DNA from: Podarcis bocagei
Taxonomy: Eukaryota
Assembly: GCA_964188305.1 (NCBI GenBank)
Contig: OZ076901.1
Direction: 5' to 3' (one strand)
Length of the DNA stretch: 64,000 nt
Part shown: positions 3,501 through 60,300 of the stretch, piece after piece
Numbering within the stretch: position 1 is the first letter of the stretch
Layout of the letters: each line of letters starts with the position of its first letter
Position numbers and translations under genes: made by a program
Notes under the pieces: model-generated
Seen by the model: the letters and a program-made list of their open reading frames with translations, nothing else
Told to the model about the DNA's origin: nothing
Databases searched by the model: none

Positions 3501-5029
3501 AAACAAAGCCTGCCCGGCCCTAGCAGACTCAGATAAAACTGGAGGAGACAGCCGCCCCACCCCAGTGAGATCTTTCTCCAGAGCCAGATTGTTCCAGAAC
3601 ATCCCAATACATTTTGCTGTCTGCAGTGAAGGACAAGACAAATCCCACCCACCCCCTTGTATGTGTAGGAGCATCTACAGGCTGGAGGGCAGCTCTGTGC
3701 AGAGGCTCCTCTGCTGGACTCCGGCGCACAAGAGAGCTTCCTCGCATGATGGCTCAGCACTACCAGGCTGCCCAATCCACCAGGGGATGCAACATTTTAC
3801 CCACCAGGTGCCAGCAACCTATGCTATGCCACTGGCTCTGTGCACCAACCCCTTCCTTGCCCCATGCTGCCTAATTGTAGGGCTGCCCCAGTTTCCATGG
3901 CTTGACTCTCTTGCTCTCCTGGGCAGCCTGTGATGACTGCGTGGACCTGAGCATCGGGCTGGTGGCCGGCATCGTCGTTGCTGACCTGCTCATTACCCTG
4001 GGGATCATGTTCCTGGTCTACTACTGCAGCAGCAAGAAGCCTGCCACCAGCTTTGGTGGGGGGGCCGCAGGGGGAGGCGCCCGCGGACGGACACGAGGTG
4101 AGTACTCTTGTGGTACACCTGGACTCTCCACAGGGGTGACTTCAGCTTCCTCCGTTGTCCCACAGAGAAAATTGGAAGTCATCTAAGCTGGGGTTGGATT
4201 GGTAAATGAATGCCAAGCATATACGGCTCCCATCTGGAGCTGGAGGTGGGGAGGGTTGCAGATCTGGTGCCAAGGGTGGGTTCTGGTACGTCCACAGCTT
4301 AAGAATTTGGGAGACCTGAAGGCTCCTCTGGGTGTTGCTGGGATGGGATCAGCTGGTTCAGGGCTTGCTTCAAGGGGTGAACTGGAGGAGAAACCAGCTG
4401 GTTGGCTGGCTAGACCCTAGCAGGGATCCTGATTGGCCCAGCCCAGAGGTCATAGCAGCAGCAGTTGCTCTGGGGTGGGGTGGGGGGACTTTACAGCCCC
4501 ATCATTCTGACACAAAGTATTTCAGCTAAAGCACCCAGGAGTTCCTTATATGTGCGGACAGGGGCTGATGCCCCACGCTTAACCACCCTGCAATAACCAC
4601 CTCCAATTCTTGGCTGTGCTAACAAATACCCACTTTGCATTGTCTTCCAGGCCAAAAGGTGGACCGCCCCCCACCTGTCCCAAACCCAGACTATGAGGTA
4701 AGCACAGCAGAGGGTGGCTGCCAGGGACCGGGAGGGAGAGTCTATGGAGGGCGGCCAAAGAACCTGATCACCATCGGCACTGGGAGGGCCAAGGGCTAGA
4801 CTGGGCACACCTGGCAGGAAGGCCCTGCAGCCCTCTGGGGGCAGCTGCTTGCTCACCTGAGGCAATCAGGCCCTGCTTGCTGGTGATCCCCATGGCCTCT
4901 CCAGGGGGAGACAGAAATGGCCCCATCACAGAAGGACCCTTGGTGAGTAACCTCTCCTCTTTATTCCAACAGCCCATCCGGAAAGGCCAGCGGGAGGTGT
5001 ATGCTGGGCTGGAGCCCAGGGCCTTCTGA
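577..5029 (+). CDS. CD3E: T-cell surface glycoprotein CD3 epsilon chain; coding exons 577-625, 2915-3145, 3927-4097, 4651-4697, 4973-5029 (about 184 aa; micro-exons may be missing)
   Basis: A 49-nt leader exon (MHLGVCLAALGLVLPL) ends at a gtaagt donor. The Ig exon reads VGISGRRVTVTCP...DFTC...IYLQIK. The stalk is CDDC and the TM segment GIVVADLLITLG keeps its Asp. The tail has the proline-rich RPPPVPNPDYEPI and the ITAM YEPI-x7-YAGL, with stop TGA at 5027-5029. All introns are GT-AG and the frame is continuous. Confidence 0.95.
912..1066 (+). mobile_element. tRNA-derived SINE (tRNA-Asn-like head + CR1-like tail)
   Basis: Head TGTGGTGCAGTGG...TTGGTGGTTCGAGCCCACCCA with A/B boxes, followed by the CR1-type 3' end GATTCCTGCATTGCAGAGGGTTGAACTAGATGA...TTCTATGATT. 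Confidence 0.65.
1692..2419. mobile_element. Composite non-autonomous DNA element containing a LINE 3' fragment and interrupted by a Sauria SINE
   Basis: Imperfect terminal inverted repeats CCCACCCTCCAA (1692) and TTGGAAGGTATG (2408-2419). The right-end motif GGAGAAATGTTGGAGGGTATG also occurs internally near 2160-2180. Confidence 0.5.
1794..2141 (-). mobile_element. Sauria SINE (near full length)
   Basis: (AAAGGT)n reversed tail, conserved core GGTCATGTGGCCAGCATGAC...GTACCTATTTATCTACTTGCAC, and a tRNA-like head at the right end. Homologous to the copies at 5969 and 37918. Confidence 0.9.
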
Positions 5030-7343: not shown

Positions 7344-10300
7344 TCACCGGTGGCGGGTCTTGGCCACTCCGATGTGGCTGTACTGCCCATTGTTGCGTTC
7401 TCCGAGAGGCTGGAGGGGAAGAGAGGCCTGCAGTTAGAACAGGGGTCTGTACTTTTCTTAACCTGCCCTAGGAACTTGCAGGTTGACTGAGGAGGATTTG
7501 GGCAAGACTGGTCTGGTGCATGGGACTGCTAGTGGACCGCGTCTGCATTGAAAGCCCCCCCACCCCCGGCTGCACTTGACCCATCCTGGCGCCACTGGAG
7601 ATGGGGTTCCCGTTAGCTATCTGGAGGCTGCAGGGATTTCCAGGGGGGCAGCTGGGTTAGTCTGCTGCAGCAAAACCAGCAAAGGCTGGATCCATTTCAG
7701 CTGCCCAGCCTGGAGTCCCTTGCCCTTTGTTTATTCATTTTTTTATGGCAAGAGGTTGCGTGGTGTCATGACCTGCCCGTGACAGATCAGAGTTTTCCCA
7801 ATATTTCTTCCATCTCACAAAAAATCTGACAGTTTGTTGAACCGGCAGCACAATCACTTCTTTTTTAGCACCTTACTACTGCCTGCCTTTTCATGGCACG
7901 TTAAAGATTTAGCAGGTTTACTAGAGCAGACGCTCTAGATTCACTTTCTCTGTCTACTTGTTTTTTAAAAAAGACCAGAAAATCCAGCAGCTATCCCAAT
8001 GAACTCCCAGAGTAGAAACAAACATGCACAGACCTTACAGCAGGCTCTGTATGAAAGAGTTGCTGCAAGGGCTGCTCACCCTGTAGTCCCCTGACCACTT
8101 GAAATGTCTCAATGCTGGGCTAACCTGGTTCTGACCTAGCCTGTCCCTTTAAGAGTACCCAGTTTTTCTAGACCAGGAGCTGGGAATCTCACCCCTCCCC
8201 TGCCTTTGCTGAACTACAACTCCCATCAGCCCCAGCAAGCCTGGCTAGCGGACAGGGATGGTGGGAGTTTTAGTTCAGCCCTATTAGAGTACCAAAGGTT
8301 CCCCACAGCTGCTCTGATCCTCTGTCATGTTAACTGGGGAGCCTGCACCCCACCCCACCCTAGTCTCCCCTCCAATGCACAAGCAGAGGGAAGTTGGGCA
8401 ACTCCTGCAGTGATGAAGTCATGAAAGCCCAGTCTACCCACTTCCAAAAGGTGGCACTATGCTTCTCTTCCTATCAGCTAACCAGAGCCAGCCATCAATC
8501 AGAACCCACCTGAACCAAGAGCTCTTAAAAACAGAACATTGCCAACATTCCTTTTCCCCTCATGATCTTTCAGACCACGCAGGATGATGCCACGTTACTG
8601 CTGAATAGTGTGGAAACTTGCTTGTAAGCTGAAGAACGTCAATAGACTTGAAATGCTTATTTTCGTAAGCCTCATTCAAAATAAACTCTCTTAAAATTGT
8701 GCCACTGGAGTTTGATGTCCGTTTGCAACTGCTCACTCCGGGGGCGAACTTTGGTAATATGGTGCCCTGAGCAAGGACAAAATTTGGCGCCCCCCCCCAT
8801 CTTATTTTCCCAACAATTTATTTTGGTGCAGCTGATTTTTCGTGAATCTTCTTAGTACAGTGGTACCTCAGGTTACATATTCTTCAGGTTACATACACTT
8901 CAGGTTACACACTCTGCTAACCCAGAAATAGTGCTTCAGGTTAAGAACTTTGCTTCAGGGTGAGAACAGAAATTGGGCTCCGGCAGCACAGCGGCAGCAG
9001 GAGGCCCCATTAGCTAAAGTGGTGCTTCAGGTTAAGAACAGTTTCAGGTTAAGAACGGACCTCCGGAATGAATTAAGTACTTAACCCGAGGTACCACTGT
9101 AGTTACCTATATAAATATAGGTATTAACAACAACACTATCATGCGCCCCCTTGACTCAGTGCCACCACCCTAAATCTAGTGCTGCTTAGTCATGGGAGAG
9201 ATTGTGTGCCTAGACCAGTGTTTCCCAACCTTTTTTGGGCAAAGGCACACTTGTTTGATGAAAAAAATCTCGAGGCACACCACCATTACAGCCCCGTGAC
9301 GTCAGCGCGCAGCGTCACGCCGGGAGGGACGCACGAAAGTGTAAGTTTCAATTTTTTCCCCTCCCCCTTGCCGGGGAACCTCCAAGCTTTGGGGGTGGGG
9401 GGGGGAGGAGGCAGCAAAGCGAGGCAGGAAGGAGAGCGCGGCTTGGCTGGGTGAGCTTTGGCATGGGCAGGGAATGAGAGCCGCGAGGCGGGCGCTGCGG
9501 ACGGAGGCGCTGCCCGCCGAGCTCGCAGGCAGCCAGGCAGGCAGACCGCGAGAGCCCCGCGCTGGGCGGCCTCTCCTCGCCGCCGCCCCGCCTCTCGCCG
9601 CCCGACTCGCCCGCCTCCCTCCAGGCAACATCTCGCGGCACACCAGGCAACATCTCGCGGCACACTAGTGTGCCGCGGAACAGTGGTTGGGAAACACTGG
9701 CCTAGACCTCTTGGATTCAGCCTACGCATTTGTGTCCGAGGAGGCTGCTATCTAGGGAAGAAAAGAAAGCTGCTGTTTCCTGTTGAAGGATAGGTGTAGG
9801 CTGAGTGCTTCTTCCACTTAAGAATGGAGGCTTAAGAATGGCCTTTGACTCCAAGCCAGAGAGGAAAGGGCTGGGAGCACCAACACACCTCATATTTGGA
9901 AACAGCTGCAGCTTCTGTTTCAAGAGTTAAGGACTCTCCCTGCTTCCTGCTACAAGCCCCACATCACAGCAAACTTCAGTTGTCCAGAAAGAACTGCAGG
10001 TGTTCTCATCATCCATTTATTCTTCCTTTAATATATTTTTTTTTCAAATGAAGTTGCTTTGGGGATTTTCTGCCACCACAGTCTCTTCATTTTACCCCAT
10101 TGGGAGGCTAATCTCTGGCCACGAGGGCTAGAAACTAGCTTTTTAAAAAAACACACAGACAGAATCATGATTCCCAGGAGAATATATTGCCTCTGCAAAG
10201 CAGCACCCTAGGCTGAGGCAGAAGAAGCTTTGCAGAAGTCAAGGAATTCTTGGATGCCCCTCATTTCACAGCTTGGGAGGAGCTGTCCAGGAAAACACCA

Positions 10301-13300
10301 CCATGGAGGAGAGGAAGGGACTGACCACAGGCACCCACTCACCTGGTAGAGCTGCTCATTGGCTAATAGGGTCTGCTTGTCAGAAGCTGCAAAGTCAAAA
10401 CAGGAAATTTCAGGATGACTCCAAATGGGTGATTAACACAATTAAAAATTAAATATACCAGGTATGGGAGCGTGGATGCCAACATGGACATTGCTCCCTG
10501 TTTCAAGGCTGTTTCCCCATCTCCCAGGAACTGCCTGTCCCCCAATGCTCACCCTGAGACCGTCGGCCCGGCTCCCCCGCGGCAATGCAGTACACGCCAA
10601 CAGCCAGGAAAAATGTAGCCACGATGCTGGCCAGCAGAATCCCCATGATCGCGGCAACGTCCAGACGAATACAATTCTGGCACACTGTGTCAAGAGGGAG
10701 AGAACTCAACATGCATCCTATGCTCACAAGCACACCTGAGTTTTGTCCACATGTGGCTTGATTTGAATAGAATATGCCTCTGAGCACATGGAAACTGTAC
10801 TAATTTTGATGTTTGCCACCCTGGGCTCCTTTGGGGGGAACGGGCAGGATAGAAATTTAATAAACGACAAGAATAATCAATACAGTGGTACATCGGGTTG
10901 CAGATGCTCCAGGTTACAGACGCTTCAGGTTACAGACTCTGCTAACCCAGAAATAGTACCTCGGGTTAAGAACTTTGCTTCAGGATGAGAACAGAAATCG
11001 TGCAGCAGCGGCGCAGCGGGAGGCCCCATTAGCTAAAGTGGTGCTTCAGGTTAAGAATAGTTTCAGGTTAAGAACGGACCTCTAGAACAAATTAAGTTCT
11101 TAACTTCAGGTACCACTGTAAATGGATGGTCCCTCGCCACTGAGTGACTAGAAACAACCAGCACTTTTGTGGGGTGGTGAATGCAGGGGTATGTATACCC
11201 CTAAACATTTTGTGAATCTTTGTACTTTTGTCCATTTACTGTATTTATTTCCCCCGATTTGAACTATAAAATGGTGATTTTCTGGAGTCAAAATGAGAGT
11301 AACCCTAAACATTTTTTGTTTGTTTGTTTTGAAAAAAAGCACTGGAAACAGCCATTTGCCATCTGGGACTAGATGAAAAGCACTTCTGCTTGTAGGGTGG
11401 GTTTTCTAGCTAAACACAACTTCTAACATCCAAACAGCCCATCAACCCAACAAAACAAACCCCGGAGCCCAGGGACTGTTGCTGCACCACAACCAGCAGA
11501 GAGACCTGCGCAATATGCTTAGCAGGATACTTACCACTAACAAAAGAACAAGCCAGCCGAGAGGCTTAAAAGTGGAACAGAAACAAATTTTGTCACTCAA
11601 AATTCTCATCTGAAAAGTATTCTAAGTTTGATGTCATTGTGTGACATCCAATGATATTTGATATTTGATTTCAGCTTCTTTAAAAAATGAAATCACAGTC
11701 AGATCTGATGTGAGCAAAGGCATTTAGTATTTGACAGCTCCCATGAATGCTGCCAATGGCGTCTGAGATCTTCCATGCAACAGCAGGTAGTAAGATGTTT
11801 GCTTTTGAAATAAGATTGTTCATTTAATTTAACCAATTACGGTAATTAGGAAACAAGCCCCAGAAAAAGATAGTACTCTCTACCATATGCGGTGATCTTG
11901 TAAGAGAGTAAAAGCTTTATGGGAAATGATTTATAACGAATTTTAACAAAAAAACAGAAGCTTTTCTTTTAGGGATAGTAGATAGTGAGATACCAAAAGA
12001 CCCCCCCAAAATTGTTTATGTATGCTACGACTGCAGCTAGAATGGTTTTTGCCCAGAGAGGGAAAGAAGCTGTAGTACCAACCCTGGAAAAGTGGCTAAT
12101 TAAATTAATGGATTATTTTGAACTGTCAAGGTTAACGTGTGTAATAAGAAACTTATTTCCTGTCCCTTCACATGGGGGAGGAAGGGCTCACGCACTTCGG
12201 ACGAACACCTGAAGACGTGTGCTATTGCACTCGAAGACACCTCTCGGGTCATCCAGGATGTCACCCAAAGACAGGCTAGAGTTTCCGTGGTTTAATGCAT
12301 TCCCATCTTTCTTCCAGCTTATTGGGAGGTTTTTATCCTCCGCTTCGCAGTAGAGGACAATGTTATTCTTTTGCTGCTTCACCGTGATGGAATCCTCAGC
12401 AATACCTATGAGGAAGGAATGACAAGGTGGAGGAAAACACCCGAACAGAGCCCTTGGGTCCATCTAGCACTCAGAAGGACCCAAGATCAGCCACAGCTGG
12501 GATGCACGAAGGAAGACCACAACCGTAAGGTAAAGGCCCTTTCACAGGAACACTCATAAGTGATGAAAAACATGGACCATATTGCTTGTGCTGGAAGAGG
12601 AGGAAGCTACAGTGGTACCTCGGGTTACATACGCTTCAGGTTACAGACTCTGCTAACCCAGAAATATTACCTCGGCTAAAGAACTTTACTTCAGGATGAG
12701 AACAGAAATTGTGTAGCAGCAGCGCGGCGGCAGCGGGAGGCCCCATTAGCTAAAGTGGTGCTTCAGGTAAGAACAGTTTCAGGTTAAGAACAGACCTCCA
12801 GAACAAATTAAGTTCTTAACCTGAGGTACCACAGCACTAAGCTGACTCCCTCCTGCAATGCAGGAATATACAGCTGTCCCATATGGGGATCAAACCTGCA
12901 ACCCTGGCGTTATCAGCACCATGCTCTAACCAACTGAGCTATGAAGAAAGGTAAGTCATTCCACTATCCAATAAAAGAGGGAGGGAATTACGTTAAGTTG
13001 TGCCAATAGTCAGCCACAACATTGCGCTACTTCACCCACTTCTGAAACAGAAACACGACCTTTTAAATGTTTTGTGGGAAGGGGCTTATTGGTGTCAAGG
13101 AGTGGTAACGATGCCCACATCTGGACACAGACGTCAGGACAATGTCTGCAACCCAGACACAAACAACTGCATCTTCCCACTGCAAAACAATGGAAGCAAT
13201 CACTCGGTGTTCAGCAGCAGTGGCAGAATGAAAAGGACAAATACCACACTAGGGACAGCTAGGAAAGGGACTGACAATAAGATGGACACAGCATTGTGTA

Positions 13301-13573
13301 AATCTACAGTGTGGCTGCATTTGAACTACTGGCTGCCACATCTCGATAAGAACACCAAAGAGCTAAAAAAAAAAGTGGGGCAGCCAAAATGAGTAAGAGA
13401 CCAGAACCCCCTCTGTCACAAGGAAAAGCTAATGTGTTTGTGGTGTCTTAGTTTTAAAAAAATGATGATGGGGAGAAGGGACATGATTGAGGTTTATGAA
13501 ATTATGCACATTGGACAGAGAAAAGTCTGCTTCTGCTCCTCTCTCTCATACAAACACACACAGACACTCACAC

Positions 13574-13649
<76 letters not shown>

Positions 13650-14259
13650 CTACAACCCAGAGTCGTACAATGAAGTGGAAGAGTGGGACATTCATCAGAG
13701 AGGGAGAGGGAGAGAGACGCAGATGAATATATTTCTTGTGGAATTCTCTGGTACAAGATGTGGTGATGACAGCTATTATTAACGTAGATTGGCGATTGAT
13801 CCTGATGGCCAAATGGAAGCTGTCTCCTGTGGTTGGTGGTTCTGCTTTATCCTCTGAACAAGGCACTGACATTTCATAGGGTCCAACAATAAGAGTCCAG
13901 CCAGTAAGACCTGATGCCTTTCAGGGTGGGACACAGAAGGTAAATGTGGCGAGCATCTTCTTTTCAAGCATTTGATACATACAGGTTTTGGGAAGCGTTT
14001 AAGAGCACAATTACAGGCAAAAATAATATGGGAAAGGATCTGTCAATGAACATTTTAAGGTGAATTGGTTAGTTGCCTCTCTTTGTCTTCCCACTCAAGG
14101 ACCCAACTTCTTCACTTTTCTGTCTTTGTTCCCCCACCTCCACAAATGTCAGGTCCTTTCCTGAGGCTGGACTCAAGGGCCTTTGAGCGAGGTCCTACCT
14201 TTGGAGAAGAGCAATCCAAAGAGGAAGGTTGCACACAAGAGATGCTGGCTGCGTCCCAT
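7344..14259 (-). CDS. CD3D: T-cell surface glycoprotein CD3 gamma/delta chain (single non-mammalian CD3G/CD3D co-ortholog); coding exons 14259-14199, 12405-12196, 10684-10553, 10386-10343, 7409-7344 (170 aa)
   Basis: Spliced translation: MGRSQHLLCATFLFGLLFSKGIAEDSITVKQQKNNIVLYCEAEDKNLPISWKKDG...[100 protein letters not shown]. It has the DPRG Ig motif, the RMCQNC stalk, the SDKQTLL di-leucine motif and the ITAM YQPL-x7-YSHI. The 132-nt and 44-nt exons match CD3D/G gene structure, and its position and orientation match CD3D. Confidence 0.93.
8858..9099 (+). mobile_element. Tc1/mariner-pogo (Tigger-like) MITE, copy 1
   Basis: TA|CAGTGGTACCTC ... GAGGTACCACTG|TA terminal inverted repeats with TA target duplication. 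Confidence 0.88.
9216..9699. mobile_element. hAT-superfamily non-autonomous element with CpG-rich interior
   Basis: TIRs CAGTGTTTCCCAACC / GGTTGGGAAACACTG and a perfect 8-bp TSD GCCTAGAC (9208-9215, 9700-9707). Confidence 0.9.
10883..11118 (+). mobile_element. Tigger-like MITE, copy 2
   Basis: Same TIRs, TA TSD and internal sequence as copy 1. Confidence 0.88.
11870..12150 (+). mobile_element. Degraded L1-clade LINE ORF2 C-terminal fragment
   Basis: The translation LFMYATTAARMVFAQ.GK...PTLEKWLIKLMDYFEL resembles the C-terminus of squamate L1 ORF2. It is frameshifted. Confidence 0.55.
12610..12834 (+). mobile_element. Tigger-like MITE, copy 3 (right TIR slightly degenerate)
   Basis: TA|CAGTGGTACCTCGGG ... 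GAGGTACCACAG. Confidence 0.85.
12838..12942 (-). mobile_element. tRNA-derived SINE fragment (tRNA head + CR1-like tail)
   Basis: Reverse strand reads ATAGCTCAGTTGGTTAGAGCATGGTGCTGATAACGCCAGGGTTGCAGGTTTGATCCCC...ATTCCTGCATTGCAGG. Confidence 0.65.
13577..13647. repeat. (CT)n(CA)n compound microsatellite inside an old CR1-like fragment
   Basis: Read directly from the sequence. Confidence 0.9.
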
Positions 14260-18787: not shown

Positions 18788-18864
<77 letters not shown>

Positions 18865-21800
18865 GGGGCGGGAGGATGATGTATGGGTTGGGGGCTTGGG
18901 CTTGTAGGGACACAGATTCATGCTTGTGGTGTTACTGATGTTGCTGGTTTGATGATTCCCAACCTGCAGGTGACCCCAATCTCAAAAGTGGCAATGGGAT
19001 TCCTGCACGCTGTGTGTACTTGGAGGAAATGGCAACAGACTTGGAGGATCAGGATTGGCTTGACATGGAGAATGTGGAGCAGGTATCTGTGCATATGCAA
19101 ATGCAGTTGATTTTTCTGCCCGACTGAGGGCTTGGCAGAGCGTCCGTGAGCCTTGGTGAAGGATGCAGGCTTTGCCCTTCAGGACACACTGTTCTCTGTG
19201 CTGATGTTCTTGAAGGACCCTTCAGCTGGATCAGTCTTGTGAATGGAAGACATTTGCCTTCTTTCCTTTTGTAGTGCTCACTTTATAGAGCAAGGCTGAC
19301 TAACCTATGGACCTGCAAATGTTGTTAGACTTTAGCTTGAATAATCCTCAACCACTAGCCATACTGGTTTGGGGCTGATGGGAGTTATAGTCCAACAACA
19401 TCTGGAGGGGCACAAGTTAGCCACCCCTGTTCTAGAGCCACCAATGTTGCATTTTGGACTTTTTGTTTAATCAAGCAGACTTGTCTGACCTGGGTGCCTG
19501 AATCCTATCACCCATTTGCTTACAGCTCATGATCAAGTGGGTGAAGGATCTGGCCTTAGACACAGAAGTTGTCTTGGATGACCTTCTGGTCTTACTGTTT
19601 GTTTTTGATACATAGTTGGGCACTTGCTCTCTGTGGCTGGTGGGTGGGCAGGGTTGTGTACTGACCATTTATGTCTGGCTTGGCATGTCTCTCCAGGCTC
19701 TCTTTACCCGGCTACTCCTCCCTGAACCAGGGAATCACCTGATTCACATGACCTCGGCTGGCATACAGAATCTATCAGCTGAAAGAGATGCAGGGGAGAA
19801 GCACATATTTCGCTACCTCTTTGCCAGCTTCCAGAGGGCAAAGGAGGAGGTGGGTCAACGCCCCACATCCCTGTCAGCAAGTCTGACTGCCTGAGCAGAG
19901 CAGCCCAGCAGACCAGAGACAAAGTGCTCTCCTCTGTTCTCCTAGATTACCAAAGTGCCAGAGAACCTGTTGCCCTTTGCCATGCGCTGCCGAAACCTTT
20001 CTGTGTCCAACACTCGCACGGTCCTCCTCACCCCGGAGATCTATATCAACCAAAATGTCTACGAGCAGCTAGTGGACTTGATGCTGGAGTCCCTTAGAGG
20101 AGCCCGTAAGTTACAGAGGCAGAGCTGGGCACCCTAGAAGAAGATAATGGGCTACAACTGCAGGAGGTCCCTCAAAGATACCCCACCTTTTTATTATAGT
20201 TGTGAATGTGTTGGGGTGTCTGTATCCTTCTATGAGAATGCATAAAGGATTGGTGTTCACTTCTCTCCTACTCTCTTACTGTAGGCTTTGAAGATGTAAC
20301 TGAGTTCCTGGAGGAAGTCATAGAAGGCCTCACTATGGATGAGGAAGTGAAGACCTTTGAGGAAGTAATGGTGCCTGTCTTTGATATCCTCTTGGGACGG
20401 ATCCGAGAGCTGCACCTTTGCCAGATCCTGCTCTACTCCTACCTGGACATGCTCCTGTACTTCACTAGGCAGAAAGATATAGCAAAAGTGAGCATTTGGC
20501 TAGCCTCTTCAGAGTGCCAGGGAGCAGCAAAGCAATCAGCCATGGCCATTTTCAGCTTCCCTCCTGGGCAGAGGGGTAGTTGCTTGTTCTCTTCACTGTG
20601 AAGGAAGCATGGCCTTCCTGATTCTGTGCTGCGGTTGCAACATGCATCAATGATGGGCTGGCCAATATGGCAGAGCCATCATTCCATAAAAGGGTGTCCT
20701 TCATTCCACTACTTACGTCGGGGCTTTACCTGTACTGGCTGACCAGCAGTACCTTCTATTTCTGTTTGTTCAGGTTTTTGTAGAGTACATCCAGCCAAAG
20801 GACCCAGCCAATGGGCAGCTCTACCAGAAGACTTTGCTGGGAGCTATCTTGAGCATCTCATGCTTGTTGAAGACCCCAGGTGTGGTAGAGAACCATGATT
20901 ACTTCTTGAATCCCTCTCGGTCCAGTCCTCAGGAGATCAAGGTGCAGGAATCCAACATCCATCAGGTGTGTGGAGGTGCACATTTCATACCAGTGTAGCT
21001 TAACCAGGCAGAGTAGAGGGGACAGCGGCGGAAAATGACAACTTCTGTCTCTTAAATTTATCTCCCTAGTGTGATTTGGTGGGTTCTTGGTTGTTCCTTA
21101 AGTCACAGATTGTCAACATCAAAGTATAGTGAAAACCTCTGCAGGAAATTCATGATGCTTGGGGTATTTGAGAAGACCAAGACCCATTAACTGCTGAAAG
21201 TTAAGGCATTTAGGAGAGAGGAGGCATAGCTCAGTGGGTAGAGCACAGATACTGCATGTGGAAGTTCCCAGTTTAAGTTGACTGAGCAAGTATGTGTGTT
21301 GTACACATCTTAAGACTTCTGATGTTTTGGTAACAGTTCATGGCTCAGTTCCATGAGAAGATCTACCAGATGCTCAAGAACCTGCTGCAGCTATCACCAC
21401 AAACAAAGCACCGAATCCTGTCCTGGCTGGGAAACTGTCTCCATGCTAATGCAGGCCGCACGAAGATATGGGCCAACCAGATGCCAGAGATTTTCTTCCA
21501 GATGTATGCCTCGGATGCCTTCTTCCTGAACTTGGGGGCCGCCCTCCTCAGGCTATGCCAGCCCTTTTGTAAGCCCAGATCGCCCCGGCTCCTCACATTT
21601 GACCCTACCTACTGTGCACTGAAAGAGCTGAATGAGGAAGAGCAGCGGAGCAAGAATGTGCATATGAAAGGTGAGCCACGACTTGGCAGGTGCCCAAATC
21701 TTGTCCTCATACTCTTGGCAAGGCAGCCTGTAAGGGAGGAGGCTGCTGGCCAAGGGCAGAGGAAGAGCTGGAGGAAACCAGAGTGCTCCCATTGGCTCTG

Positions 21801-53800: not shown

Positions 53801-56800
53801 CTATCCTTAGTCTACATTTTTGGAAAGAAACAAGTGGAACTGACCAACTAATCTCCAGAGCTACTAGCTTTCATGGTGGGGAAAACTTACAGTACTTTAA
53901 CAGTCAACTGGAGAGAAATCCTTTTCCTGTAGCAGAAGCTATTGGTTCCAGCAGTTAACAAGCATTATATATAATGCTTGTTTAAAAACTTTTGTTTTCT
54001 TTGGTTTCAGTAGCCTGTTTGCATATTGTGTGACTTTGAAACGCACACCCTTATTCCCATCTTGCAGAGAAGCTGAATGTGCACTTTCTTTCCCCTTCCT
54101 TCACTTTACCTGCAGCCTCAGCCAAGCCTAGCGCACGCAAACCTCGTGGGAGACCCCGAAACAGCTCAGACCGAAGTTCAGTTGTGCTCTCAGAGTCCTC
54201 ACCTGTGTATTCACCTTCAAGCAAACCAGAACCCATCTCCATGGAAAAATTAAAGAGGAAAGAATTGAAAAGTGCAGAAAAGCGACGAGGGAGGCCTCCT
54301 GCACTTAGCAGTGTGAAGTTCAAGATCACCCGCAAAGAGGTCATTCCAGATGCTCAGAAAGGAGGCAAGGAGGAAAAAGAGAATCTAAAGAAAATAAAGC
54401 GAGCGCCTTCCACTACATTTCAGCATGCTGCAAAAATTAAGAAACTAAGAGCAGGAAAACTCTCTCCACTGAAGTCTAAATTCAAATCTGGAAAGCTCCA
54501 GATTGGAAGAAAAGGGGTTCAGATTGTACGCAGGAGAGGAAGGCCACCATCTTCTGATCGCTTGAAGACCGCACCGGCTCTAGTTGTGAGTTCTCCGTTA
54601 GAGAAGGCCCAGAAGGTGCGAAAGGAGAAAGATGGAGTCTCGCCCCTGTCGAAGGATGAGAAGCCAGCTGTGAGGCAGAGCCCCCGCAGGCCTGTGAGGA
54701 TCATCCCTTCCTCCAAGAGGACGGATGCTACGATTGCCAAGCAACTCTTGCAGAGGGCTAAAAAGGGGGCCCAGAAGAAGATCGAGAAAGAAGCAGCAAA
54801 GCTTCAAGGCCGGAAGGGGAGGACGCAGCTCAAAAACATCCGGCAGTTCATCATGCCAGTGGTGAGTGCGATCTCTTCGCGGATCATTAAAACTCCCAAG
54901 CGCTTCATTGAAGATGAAGACTATGATCCACCAATCAAAATAGCCCGTCCGGAATCCACACCAAATAGCCGCTTCAGTGCTCCCTCTTGTGGGTCCAGTG
55001 AGAAGTCCAGCGGCGCCTCTCAGCACTCCTCTCAGGTGTCTTCAGATTCCTCACGGTCCAGCAGTCCCAGTGTTGACACGTCCACAGATTCTCAGGCCTC
55101 TGAAGAGATGCAGGCCTTATCTGAAGAACGCAGCAATACTCCAGAAGTTCACCCTCCGTTGCCCACATCCCCTTCCCCTGATAACGAGAGTGGTGAGAGG
55201 AGGAGGAGGAGGTTTTCTATGGCAGAGAGAAATTTTGTGCCCAAAGCAGCTAAAAAACTGCCCAGCCTCCAAAGTGTGTCCCAGCAGCAGCAGTCATCGT
55301 CTTCCTCTCCTCCTCCACCGCTCCTCACCCCACCGCCACCACTCCAGCCAGCTGCCGGCATTTCAGACCATGCCCCTTGGCTTATGCCCCCCACCATCCC
55401 TTTGGCATCGCCCTTTCTGCCCTCCTCAGCTGCTCCCATGCAAGAAAAGCGGAAGTCGATTCTTCGAGAGCCAACATTCCGTTGGACCTCTCTAAAGCAC
55501 TCTCGGTCCGAACCCCAGTACTTTTCCTCAGCCAAGTATGCCAAAGAAGGTCTCATCCGCAAGCCCATCTTTGATAACTTCAGGCCTCCTCCGCTGACCC
55601 CTGAGGATGTTGGCTTTGCCTCTGGTTTTTCAACACCTGGAGCTGCAGCTCCAGCCCGCTTGTTTTCTCCTCTTCACTCTGGAACAAGATTCGACCTACA
55701 CAAAAGGAGCCCCTTGCTACGAGCTCCAAGGTTCACCCCAAGTGAGGCCCACTCACGCATCTTTGAGTCTGTAACTTTGCCTTCTTCTGTTAGTCGATCG
55801 GCAGCAGGAAGCACTGCAGCAGCATCCTCTTCGAAGAAGCGGAAGAAGAGAGGGTTCAGCCCAATTCGATCAGAACCCAGATCTCCTTCGCACTCCATGA
55901 GGACGAGAAGTGGAAGACTAAGCACCTCTGACCTGTCCACTCTCACTCCATCCTCATCAGTTTCTTCCTCGCTGACAAGCATTCCTGTGGGTTCCCTTAC
56001 CACCAGTGCCTTAAACTCCACTTTTACTTTTCCATCCCATTCTCTCTCCCATCCTGGGGAGTCGGCAGAGAAAAGCCAGAGACCGAGGAAGCAGGCAAGC
56101 ATTCCGGCTGAGCCTTTCTCATCCGGGAGCCCCACTCCCCTCTTTCCATGGTTCACACCAAGTCCCCAAACGGAGAGAGGCAAGAACAGAGACAAAGCCT
56201 CCAGTGAGGAACCATCCAAAGATAAAGAAAGTGACAAAGGTCTTGAGAAGGAAAAGAGCAGAGAGAGGGATAGAGAGAGGGAGAAAGAGAATAAGCGGGA
56301 GTCCAGGAAAGAGAAAAGGAAAAAGGCTCCAGAGATTCAGAGCAGCTCAACTTTGTTCCCACTGACTCGAGTTTCCAAAGGAAAAGTCGTCCGTGAAGAT
56401 GTAGCCATTTCCTCTTCTGCCAAAAAAACTGCAGGCCGGAAGAAATTGGCGGCTGCTGATCCAGCAGCAGATGTGCCTGCTGTGGTTCTTGTAGACTCAG
56501 CAGCAGCCATCATCAAGACCAAACTGCCCAAGAAAGGCCGAGGGGGGTTAGAGAAATCCAGTCTGGAACTTGGATTGGCTGCTCCTTCCATGGAAAAGGA
56601 AGAATCCCTGCGTCTCCCAGCTGCTGCTTCAGTCAACATTGTGAAACATTCCTCCATCAGCTCAGTGCTGGCTCATGCAGACAAACTTCCAATGACTGAC
56701 AAGAGGGTGGCCAGCCTCCTCAAGAAAGCAAAAGCCCAGCTGTATAAGATTGAGAAGAGCAAGTCCCTGAAGCAGGTGGATCAGCCAAAAGGACAGGTAT

Positions 56801-57234
56801 TTACCCCCAAAGTAGTGGTTTGAAAAAGAGGTAGCACATAAAGGGAAATAACTACGACAATAGAAGGCCATTCAGTGCCTGGCTGGCACCGTGAGGGGGA
56901 GGCCAAAGCTCTTGACATAAGTGGCCTGAGTAGGTGCAGCATCTCAGGTTTCTAGGTCCTTGTAAGCAAACCAGAGCGTGACCTCAGATCATCATTTAGC
57001 TGCCTCTGCTTTGGAGTCACAGTTCCCACTGAGGTGTCCTTTTGAAGCTTCCTGTTGCCTTGATCTCATGTCTTGCCCATCCCAAGGGAAAGCAATGGCT
57101 CCTTTTTGAATTACTGGTGAGAGTTTTCTCACTGCAGCCTTTTACCTTCATGCTGTATTGTTTTTAACATTCGATTGGGAGCCGCCCAGAGTTGCTGGGG
57201 AAACTCAGCCAGATGGGCGGGGTATAAATAATAA

Positions 57235-57284
<50 letters not shown>

Positions 57285-57333
57285 TGCTTCCACTTACCTT
57301 TTACCAAAGACTATCTCAACCCACCCTGGCCAG

Positions 57334-57374
<41 letters not shown>

Positions 57375-60300
57375 TACACAACAGCCAAGGGATGCATGGC
57401 AGTTACCAGATGTCTCCCCAAAGCTGTTGCACTTTTCTAACAGGTGTAGGATTTGGTGGGCTTTTGGTCACGCATGAGGTGCATAACTAGCTGTTTGATG
57501 CATTTTATGTAAGTAGTGGCAGGAATTGTTCCTTTCTTTGCAAGTCTTAGCCTTAGCTAAGTATTTTTACACTTAAAATTTTACTGTTCATGGGGGGGGA
57601 CTACTTCTGATTTCTGCTGTGTCCTCCATTTGAAAACACATTTAGAGAAGGTTCAGAGATCTTTAACCTTCTGCTGGACAAACTGCTTTTACTTTTGAAC
57701 TTGAATCGCTCCCTGTGGGATGGTTGATTGTTTCTTAACAGCCTTTTCCTGTGTTCTTGCCCTGCTTGGAATTTAGGGTCAAGAGAGTGATTCTTCAGAG
57801 ACCTCTGTGCGAGGGCCACGCATAAAGCATGTTTGCAGAAGGGCAGCTGTAGCACTAGGCCGCAAGCGAGCCGTCTTTCCAGATGACATGCCCACTCTGA
57901 GTGCCTTACCATGGGAAGAACGAGAGAAGATACTGTCTTCCATGGGGAACGATGGTAAGTGTCTGAATTTATGCTGTTTTCTCCAAGGGTGCATCAGTGG
58001 CAAGGGAAGGTATGCGAGGCTGTAGGATGAAGGAGTTGTGTTTCTAGGAAATCTGGATGGGCCCCGCTGTGAAACTGTTCTGAGAAACCAGCGATGGCCA
58101 GCAAAGTCTGTTCTGTTGAGGACTCACTTCTCCTTTATTGATTGCTGAATTAATAGCTGGTCTTTCATTTCACAGACAAGTCCTCAGTTGCAGGTTCAGA
58201 AGATGCCGAGCCCCTTGCACCTCCCATCAAACCTATCAAGCCAGTTACCAGAAACAAGGCCCCCCAGGAGCCCCCTGTGAAGAAAGGCAGGCGGTCAAGG
58301 CGCTGTGGGCAGTGCCCAGGCTGCCAGGTCCCAGAGGACTGTGGTGTCTGCACAAATTGCCTGGATAAGCCAAAGTTTGGTGGGCGGAACATCAAGAAGC
58401 AGTGCTGCAAGTAAGTGTGTGGGTGTGAAGCCCACCCCTGCCCTCCCGTTGCTCTGGGAATAAGGCCCTCCGTTGTTGGTTTATGGTGCTTCTACCCTGT
58501 TTCCTATAAAATATTTAGCCAGAGGAAGATCCTTTCACTTGCATCAAAGAAGAGCTAAGGAGCAGAAGACTAGTGACTTTGTCATCCTCTGAGCTTGGCT
58601 GCTGCCTTTCCTTCCTCTTGGAGTTCAAAGTGGCAGTTGGGGGCTCTCAAGAGAGTGGCAGGGAAATGGACAGGGTTGGGTGGGGCAGTGGAGAGATCTA
58701 CCTCCTCTTTTCTTCAGCCTTTTCAGATTTTGGATTTACCCTGCTGTGTATTCTGCTGAACGTGAAAACTAAAGTGTAGTGTGGAGAGTTGATCCCCTGG
58801 GTGAATATGTGCCACAGCATGCTTCCTCTGAGCAGCCTTCCTCACAGTGGCTTGGCCAAACCTCAGAGCAAGGTTTCAGATCTTAAACAAAGAGGGAGAA
58901 CAGTTATCTTCTTCGCATCTTGAAAGTAAGGCTTTTTGAAGATGCTTCAAAAGTAGTTGCTTTTCGGGATAGCAGAAAGGCTGACATAGCAGAGATGGTG
59001 CTGCTGGGGCGATCTTTCTCATCCTTTTAGCCAGATTGGTCTGCCATTGATCTCGAACTTTGGCATGGCTCCAAAGCAGATATCTTTCCACTTGAGATGC
59101 AGCAGCCTGCAACATGCCTGGGAATCCAAAGGCTTGTTTGTGACGGGTGATGCATATTGCCATCTCCTTCCTTTATTCCCCCCTAGGATGAGGAAGTGTC
59201 AGAATTTGCAGTGGATGCCATCAAAAGCCTATCTCCAGAAGCAAGCCAAAGGTAGGTGCCTTTTTTTCCTTATTTCTATTGTGATGGGGAGAGAAAGGCA
59301 TAGTTAACAGCTGCAGAGTCTTTGCTTCAGCCTCAGCCTCAGCTCCATCTAGGCAGTGTGGGCAGGCTGGCGTATCCTTAGGCACCACCCTCCCCTCTGG
59401 CTGTCGGTCACTTGGGGGAGGCCAGTGCCATAGGCTGTGCTATCAGTCATTGCACCTGAGGTGCTGCTTTTGCTTTACAGCTGTGAAAAAGAAAGAGAAG
59501 AAATCCAAGTCCAGTGAAAAGAAAGAGATCCATGCTGGGAAGAGCCAGCCAGAGGCTGGACAGAAAGCAGCTGCTCCTCAGCTCACCTTGGCGAAAGAGG
59601 ATCATGCCTCCAAAAGGGGCAGTGAACCTGCCCGGAAGCCCAGTGAGGAGAAGAGTGAGGAGGGCCCACCACCACTGACTCCGCCTCCCCCAGACACCAA
59701 GCAGGCCCCTCCCCCTGCAGCCCGGAAGGCTGGCAAGCAGCAGGCACCGCCCCCCACGCAGGTGCCTCCCACCCCACCGCCTAGTACAGGCCCACCAAAA
59801 AAGGAAGCCCCCAAAACCATCCCTGCTGAGCCCAAGAAGAAGGCAGCTCCACCACCAGAAGTGGGTAGGTATTCAATTGCAGCAAAGGTAGTTGTTAGCT
59901 GCCTCTGCAAAGTCAAGCAGCCCACCTCTGGACTCCATGGAAGAGATGTGACCACATCTTCTGTACTAATTGGGCTCCTAAGTGGGTCAGGAAAGAGCAG
60001 CCTTGGACACACCTGGGCAGGTTAGCAAGTGTGTGGCGAGCTGCAGGAAATCCTATAGTGCCCACTCCTCCCTAACAAATTGGAATTGCTAGTTCACTGT
60101 GTTTTGTTTTCAGCTTTCCACAACAGCGTCTTAAGAAGTTGCTGTTGTCTCCTTAAGTCCCCAAATTCTGTTTGACTGCTAGAAGCAACTCTTGGCTTTT
60201 AACAAACTGCATTTGTACTTTTCCTAGGGATCGAGCAAAGCAGACAGAAGAAAATAACTCCTCGTCCAAGCTTACCAGTGAAACAGAAGCCAAAAGAAAA

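Follow-up and report, generated by a model that had tools for sequence, protein, structure and literature searches.

Assembly of the T-cell receptor (TCR) with CD3 relies on three basic and six acidic residues located in the membrane. Can this complex be built if the gamma/delta-type CD3 chain contributes no acid? The question is raised by a 64,000-nucleotide stretch of contig OZ076901.1 of the lizard Podarcis bocagei (assembly GCA_964188305.1), hereafter called the window, in which the only CD3 gamma/delta gene codes for a serine at the position of the membrane acid. The initial annotation of the window had proposed that this sole chain lacks the acid, that the gene is otherwise intact, that the neighbouring CD3E retains its membrane Asp and that a sequencing error is an unlikely cause. 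All four proposals held up at the level of the locus, as detailed below. It had also treated the serine as a trait of this lizard; we found instead that it is fixed in all non-gecko squamates sampled.

A serine in place of the membrane acid

The membrane span of the P. bocagei chain is encoded by exon 3, which comprises 2 nt, 43 codons and 1 nt and is flanked on the minus strand by an AG acceptor (10686-10685) and a GT donor (10552-10551). Its first two bases complete a Met codon, giving the translation (M)CQNCIRLDVAAIMGILLASIVATFFLAVGVYCIAAGEPGRRSQ, and codon 19 of the exon, AGC, specifies Ser110. A phmmer comparison of the exon with all PDB chains yielded matches to CD3 delta and CD3 gamma only, both of them ungapped (human CD3 delta 93-134, E 8e-9; human CD3 gamma 104-143, E 4e-8). 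Because the alignments contain no gaps, the serine stands opposite Asp111 of CD3 delta (IIVTDVIAT) and Glu122 of CD3 gamma (FLFAEIVS), the same correspondence that the initial annotation had put forward. Reading of the exon 3 translation revealed no further Asp or Glu in the membrane span. The Asp or Glu typical of gamma/delta-type spans is therefore missing, its place being taken by Ser (AGC). The hydroxyl of the canonical DxxxT motif, one turn below the key position, is present, as the window reads S-I-V-A-T. Serine in place of the membrane acid is thus confirmed in the only CD3 gamma/delta gene of the locus.

The sole acidic residue upstream of the cytoplasmic end is the Asp of an RLD motif. 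We considered it as a displaced or compensating membrane acid and ruled it out: it is extracellular, it pairs with the extracellular ELD that human CD3 delta possesses as well, and it is replaced by Asn in four other Ser-bearing species.

Distribution of the residue across vertebrates

The exon was scanned with HMMER against 1.84 billion representative proteins, and two word-indexed protein searches, with the Anolis and Podarcis proteins as queries, were added. An aligned residue at the key position was available for 263 CD3 gamma, delta or gamma/delta sequences: Asp in 138, Glu in 86, Ser in 36 and Asn in 3. The Ser sequences are 35 entries from non-gecko squamates and one from a sawshark. 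Serine is present in every non-gecko squamate recovered, namely 19 named species from 11 families, including lacertids, an amphisbaenian, iguanians, anguimorphs, snakes and skinks, and no acid-bearing form from a non-gecko squamate was found in the scan of representative proteins. Species with Ser include the Lacertidae Podarcis muralis, P. raffonei, P. lilfordi, Lacerta agilis and Zootoca vivipara, Rhineura floridana (Rhineuridae), Sceloporus undulatus (Phrynosomatidae), Pogona vitticeps and Phrynocephalus forsythii (Agamidae), Anolis carolinensis and A. sagrei (Dactyloidae), Varanus komodoensis (Varanidae), Elgaria multicarinata (Anguidae), Crotalus tigris (Viperidae), Candoia aspera (Boidae), the colubroid snake Erythrolamprus reginae, and Lerista edwardsae and Tiliqua scincoides (Scincidae). 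Three read-assembly sequences also have Ser.

Geckos carry Asp (Gekko kuhli, G. japonicus and Heteronotia binoei) or Glu (Sphaerodactylus townsendi and Eublepharis macularius), and two further gecko-like read assemblies have Asp in one case and Asn in the other (P0053). Asp is found in tuatara and in every turtle and bird, the turtle and bird sequences numbering more than 100.

Only three further departures from an acid were seen, all outside the squamates. The CD3 delta chain-like isoform X2 of the sawshark Pristiophorus (P0047) has Ser at the homologous site (GILIASVIST), possibly a second, independent instance of this replacement; skates have Asp. Asn takes the place of the membrane acid in CD3 delta of Sorex araneus (P0006, a 136-residue model that is possibly partial) and in the goby Neogobius melanostomus (P0055).

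A single origin followed by constraint

We fetched nine squamate loci. In each of them UBE4A is followed by CD3 gamma/delta and CD3E, with the relative orientation conserved, and there is just one transmembrane exon of the gamma/delta type and one of the epsilon type. Given this conserved gene order with one exon of each type, the Ser and acid forms are orthologues. Podarcis, Rhineura, Varanus, Candoia, Pogona and Elgaria all use AGC as the key codon; Lerista and a skink-like transcript use AGT. The geckos Gekko and Sphaerodactylus have GAC and GAA, respectively. The codon pattern is consistent with a single two-step change, e.g. GAC>AAC>AGC, and the Asn of the gecko-like sequence is a possible intermediate on such a path.

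In a maximum-likelihood tree built from 30 proteins, 17 of which are Ser forms, the latter make up one side of a single branch (support 91/86), so that one change is needed, and shuffled labels were never as clustered as the observed Ser label. The standard squamate phylogeny dates this change after the gecko split and before the skink split. The initial annotation had advocated a multi-species alignment of the transmembrane segments to see where Ser arose. As judged from the comparisons made here, the replacement of the acid by Ser has a single origin, in the ancestor shared by all non-gecko squamates.

The branch lengths of the Ser clade sum to approximately 6 substitutions per site, a figure somewhat inflated by one mis-annotated row, with zero changes at the key site. 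Invariance among 16 non-gecko sequences is limited to 8 of the 43 exon columns, namely the two C and the Q of the CxxC stalk, Gly14, Ala18, Ser19, Phe25 and Val30. Thr at i+4 is nearly invariant; non-gecko squamates keep either this Thr or a Ser at i+3. By all appearances, the invariance of the serine is the signature of purifying selection and not a neutral leftover.

In CD3 epsilon, the membrane span keeps ADLLxT in the window and in all nine loci. Just outside the membrane, the CD3 epsilon residue that belongs to an E-M-D motif (window 3929-3960) is Asp in two geckos and Ser or Gly in all eight of eight non-gecko squamates; its shift may represent a second change on the same stem lineage.

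Proposed membrane contact and its competitors

The acids of the canonical complex lie in DxxxT motifs, the Thr hydroxyls of which belong to the lysine network (PMC13107469). On the receptor side, TCR alpha of the skink Tiliqua rugosa keeps its Arg and Lys and TCR beta its Lys (PMC11754216), and the CD3 gamma/delta chain of its congener T. scincoides has the Ser. We propose that the membrane-buried acid was changed to Ser once and then kept so by purifying selection. With this as the animal's sole gamma/delta-type chain, the two CD3 heterodimers would both carry the Ser form and hence a single acid each. Per dimer, the lysines of TCR alpha and beta would be offered one carboxylate, that of the CD3 epsilon Asp, plus hydroxyls, rather than two carboxylates, and the hydroxyl donors would be Ser110, the conserved Thr one helical turn below it and the Thr of CD3 epsilon. 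This would leave the membrane network with three basic and four acidic residues, instead of three and six. In the most economical reading, which we consider probable, each TCR lysine would find its partner in the lone carboxylate of CD3 epsilon, with the Ser and Thr hydroxyls solvating the lysine. That the serine contributes to the lysine contact, and that the complex still assembles efficiently, are inferences. For the broader proposition, that non-gecko squamates run their alpha/beta TCR on four membrane acids, with a Lys-Asp-Ser/Thr contact at both CD3 dimers that arose after the loss of the gamma/delta TCR and has been selectively maintained, we see the chances as evenly balanced.

Several observations speak against such a contact. 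In reconstitutions with human and mouse proteins, replacing one acid or the other in a CD3 dimer impairs assembly, and a DAP12 dimer made of one Asp and one Ser supports assembly only at a very low level (PMC1440944). The acid of CD3 gamma takes part in assembly (PMC2120718). As acid replacement and the Asp-Ser dimer both result in poor assembly, an interface with Ser in place of an acid is not expected to work without compensation, and we identified no compensating change, none being visible in the CD3 epsilon membrane span of the window and the nine loci. The invariance of the serine could also stem from a packing need instead of a contact with lysine.

The strongest competing explanation holds that the acid is dispensable, contacts of the ectodomain and stalk together with the CD3 epsilon Asp being sufficient, perhaps after the loss of the gamma/delta TCR, and that Ser is a tolerated small residue without a role towards lysine. 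The site varies in geckos (D, E or N), whereas it is D in all of the turtle and bird sequences, which hints that the constraint was loosened in stem squamates, when the gamma/delta TCR was reportedly lost. The natural Asn of the shrew and goby chains likewise counts for dispensability. However, without constraint, drift to Ala, Gly, Thr, Asn or Cys would be expected, and the serine has remained unchanged over the depth of the Ser clade and its 11 families, while neighbouring membrane positions vary freely. This later invariance argues against full neutrality, and we regard the explanation as rather unlikely.

Loss of the gamma/delta TCR has been reported for all squamates, geckos included (PMC11754216). 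It alone does not explain the switch to Ser, since geckos, which reportedly also lack this receptor, keep the acid, and the switch is apparently the later of the two events. Of the connection that the initial annotation had drawn between serine and receptor loss, the loss itself is thus supported by the literature, but the link is loose and indirect given the Asp or Glu of geckos. The initial annotation had also considered that the substitution might turn out to be already known, widespread and neutral: widespread it is, but no description of it was found in the open-access papers and preprints searched, and the invariance of Ser argues against full neutrality.

An altered partnership or stoichiometry is improbable. 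The Ser chain would in that case not lie beside a TCR lysine, e.g. owing to a different arrangement or to a different use of the squamate-specific TRE chain, and the set of squamate TCR chains has indeed been remodelled, with loss of TRG and TRD and an extra TRE locus (PMC11754216). Nevertheless, geckos have kept the acid although they, too, are reported to possess TRE and to have lost the gamma/delta TCR. The canonical basic residues are moreover retained in squamate TCR alpha and beta, TRE has a Lys (PMC11754216), and the CD3 gamma/delta gene has conserved its CxxC stalk, its Ig domain and its ITAM.

The gene and its neighbourhood

Five minus-strand exons were assembled into a gene for a 170-residue protein, with AG/GT at all internal junctions (Table 1). 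The immunoreceptor tyrosine-based activation motif (ITAM), YQPL-x7-YSHI (YQPLGERNNGQYSHI), is split across exons 4 and 5. A near-identical protein (P0080) matches the immunoglobulin (Ig) domain signature PF16680 with 56.8 bits (cut-off 30.1) and the ITAM signature PF02189 with 27.7 bits (cut-off 22.2). Compared with the RefSeq protein of Podarcis muralis, the window protein has 4 differences in 170 residues; the count is 5 to 6 for P. raffonei and P. lilfordi and 11 for Lacerta agilis. In the tree, the window protein is placed inside Podarcis. With its CD3-type Ig ectodomain, its CxxC stalk and homologous transmembrane helix, its single ITAM and the CD3E/UBE4A gene order, the gene is a bona fide CD3 gamma/delta.

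Table 1. Positions of the CD3 gamma/delta and CD3E features and of the presumed KMT2A exons in the window
Feature	Position	Strand	Remarks
CD3 gamma/delta exon 1: start codon and signal peptide, MGRSQHLLCATFLFGLLFSK, and first base of a Gly codon	14199..14259	-	fits the MGxxxHLL consensus of reptile orthologues
CD3 gamma/delta exon 2: Ig domain with DPRG motif	12196..12405	-	Pfam PF16680 Ig_4, 37 bits vs cut-off 30.1
CD3 gamma/delta exon 3: CxxC stalk, transmembrane helix, start of cytoplasmic tail	10553..10684	-	
Ser110 codon AGC	10626..10628	-	homologous position of human CD3 delta Asp111 and CD3 gamma Glu122
CD3 gamma/delta exon 4: ASDKQTLLANEQLYQ, first half of ITAM	10343..10386	-	
CD3 gamma/delta exon 5: PLGERNNGQYSHIGVAKTRHR and stop codon, second half of ITAM	7344..7409	-	
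CD3 epsilon stalk and transmembrane exon, Asp-x3-Thr kept (GIVVADLLIT)	3929..4045	+	GIVVADLL at 3968-3991
CD3E proline-rich exon	4665-4694	+	
Long open exon and CXXC zinc-finger exon (CGQCPGCQVPEDCGVCTNCLDKPKFGG)	54052-60000	+	presumably KMT2A

CD3E lies on the plus strand, tail-to-tail with CD3 gamma/delta. Near the other end of the window, at about 54-60 kb, lie two exons that presumably belong to KMT2A, one of them long and open, the other encoding a CXXC zinc finger. UBE4A is likely to be situated between KMT2A and CD3 gamma/delta, as it adjoins the latter in related loci. Simple-sequence repeats are present on the minus strand in the first intron and the upstream region of CD3 gamma/delta (13500-13700 and 18790-18890), in the form of GA/GT-type dinucleotide runs, together with a short tandem unit whose translation gives SIYL repeats. 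Several database models of squamate CD3 gamma/delta (P0001, P0002, P0030, P0043 and P0036; Ensembl/UniRef Podarcis and Anolis, Phrynocephalus and Lerista) run past the donor after LYQ into the intron. Because the donor is read through, these models are devoid of the true last exon and of the second half of the ITAM.

A hidden paralogue, i.e. an acid-bearing CD3 gamma/delta elsewhere in the genome that performs the canonical job, is very improbable. No second gamma/delta-type Ig or transmembrane exon was found in the 64 kb from CD3E to KMT2A, tblastn having returned noise besides CD3E. The other squamate loci each have one such transmembrane exon, the two protein searches recovered one gene per lacertid proteome, and the scan of representative proteins was silent on an acid-bearing form from a non-gecko squamate, as stated above.

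A 917-nt contig of the read assembly SRR12656984 holds an uninterrupted 183-residue open reading frame of the Ser form, which groups with the skink sequence; since the genomic gene spans several kilobases, this contig corresponds to a spliced mRNA. A sequencing or assembly error, or a pseudogene, is of negligible probability, because the same transmembrane exon is found in four other lacertid assemblies and Ser in many further species, the reading frame and splice sites of the window gene are intact, and a Ser-form transcript, the skink-like one, exists.

Comparison with known systems

The lizard chain shares its exon layout, CxxC stalk, PF16680 Ig domain and ITAM with human and mouse CD3 delta and gamma of the TCR-CD3 complex (e.g. 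PDB 6JXR) and with the single CD3 gamma/delta of birds, turtles and tuatara. The ungapped transmembrane segment, the Thr one turn below the key site and the CD3E and UBE4A neighbours are common to them as well. In contrast to all of these chains, its key residue is Ser rather than Asp or Glu, which would give one acid per CD3 dimer instead of two. Gecko CD3 gamma/delta (Gekko, Heteronotia, Sphaerodactylus and Eublepharis) is the orthologue with the same gene order, in animals that have reportedly lost the gamma/delta TCR too (PMC11754216), but it has kept Asp or Glu (GAC or GAA), with Asn in one gecko-like sequence.

DAP12, DAP10 and Fc receptor gamma dimers, whose motif combines one basic with two acidic residues and DxxxT, operate on the same principle, in which a receptor Lys or Arg meets a polar site of the dimer that includes Thr hydroxyls (PMC1440944, PMC13107469). 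The Asp/Ser dimer of the DAP12 type, which assembles so poorly, is engineered, whereas the lizard Asp/Ser pair would be a natural and conserved state. In the B-cell receptor, CD79A and CD79B form an ITAM-bearing heterodimer of the Ig superfamily, which joins its antigen receptor without a basic-acidic trio and uses hydroxyl and aromatic hydrogen bonds in the membrane (PMC13107469). It differs from the lizard case in that it belongs to another gene family and relies on extensive helix packing, while lizard CD3 epsilon still provides an Asp and the TCR presumably still has a Lys.

Significance

We found no description of the squamate serine in open-access PMC papers and bioRxiv preprints, which is weak evidence of absence, and a 2026 review of membrane-based immune-receptor assembly makes no mention of reptiles. 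The sequences that bear the Ser were already public.

The contact of one basic with two acidic residues is treated as a universal organising principle of TCR-CD3 and of many activating immune receptors. An ancient, clade-wide and conserved serine offers a natural test of whether this rule reflects a physical necessity or mammalian history. If the proposed contact is correct, a clade of roughly 9,000 or more living species, comprising every lizard and snake except the geckos, would have used, for well over 100 million years, four membrane acids where six are held to be obligatory, and the rule of two acids per basic residue would not be universal. Squamates would then provide natural solutions for assembling a receptor with reduced charge, and quality control in the endoplasmic reticulum or signal coupling might be altered as well. 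The serine may also be of use in designing engineered receptors that contain fewer buried charges. For the squamates themselves, the serine represents a second fixed remodelling of the T-cell receptor, beside the loss of the gamma/delta TCR and the gain of TRE.

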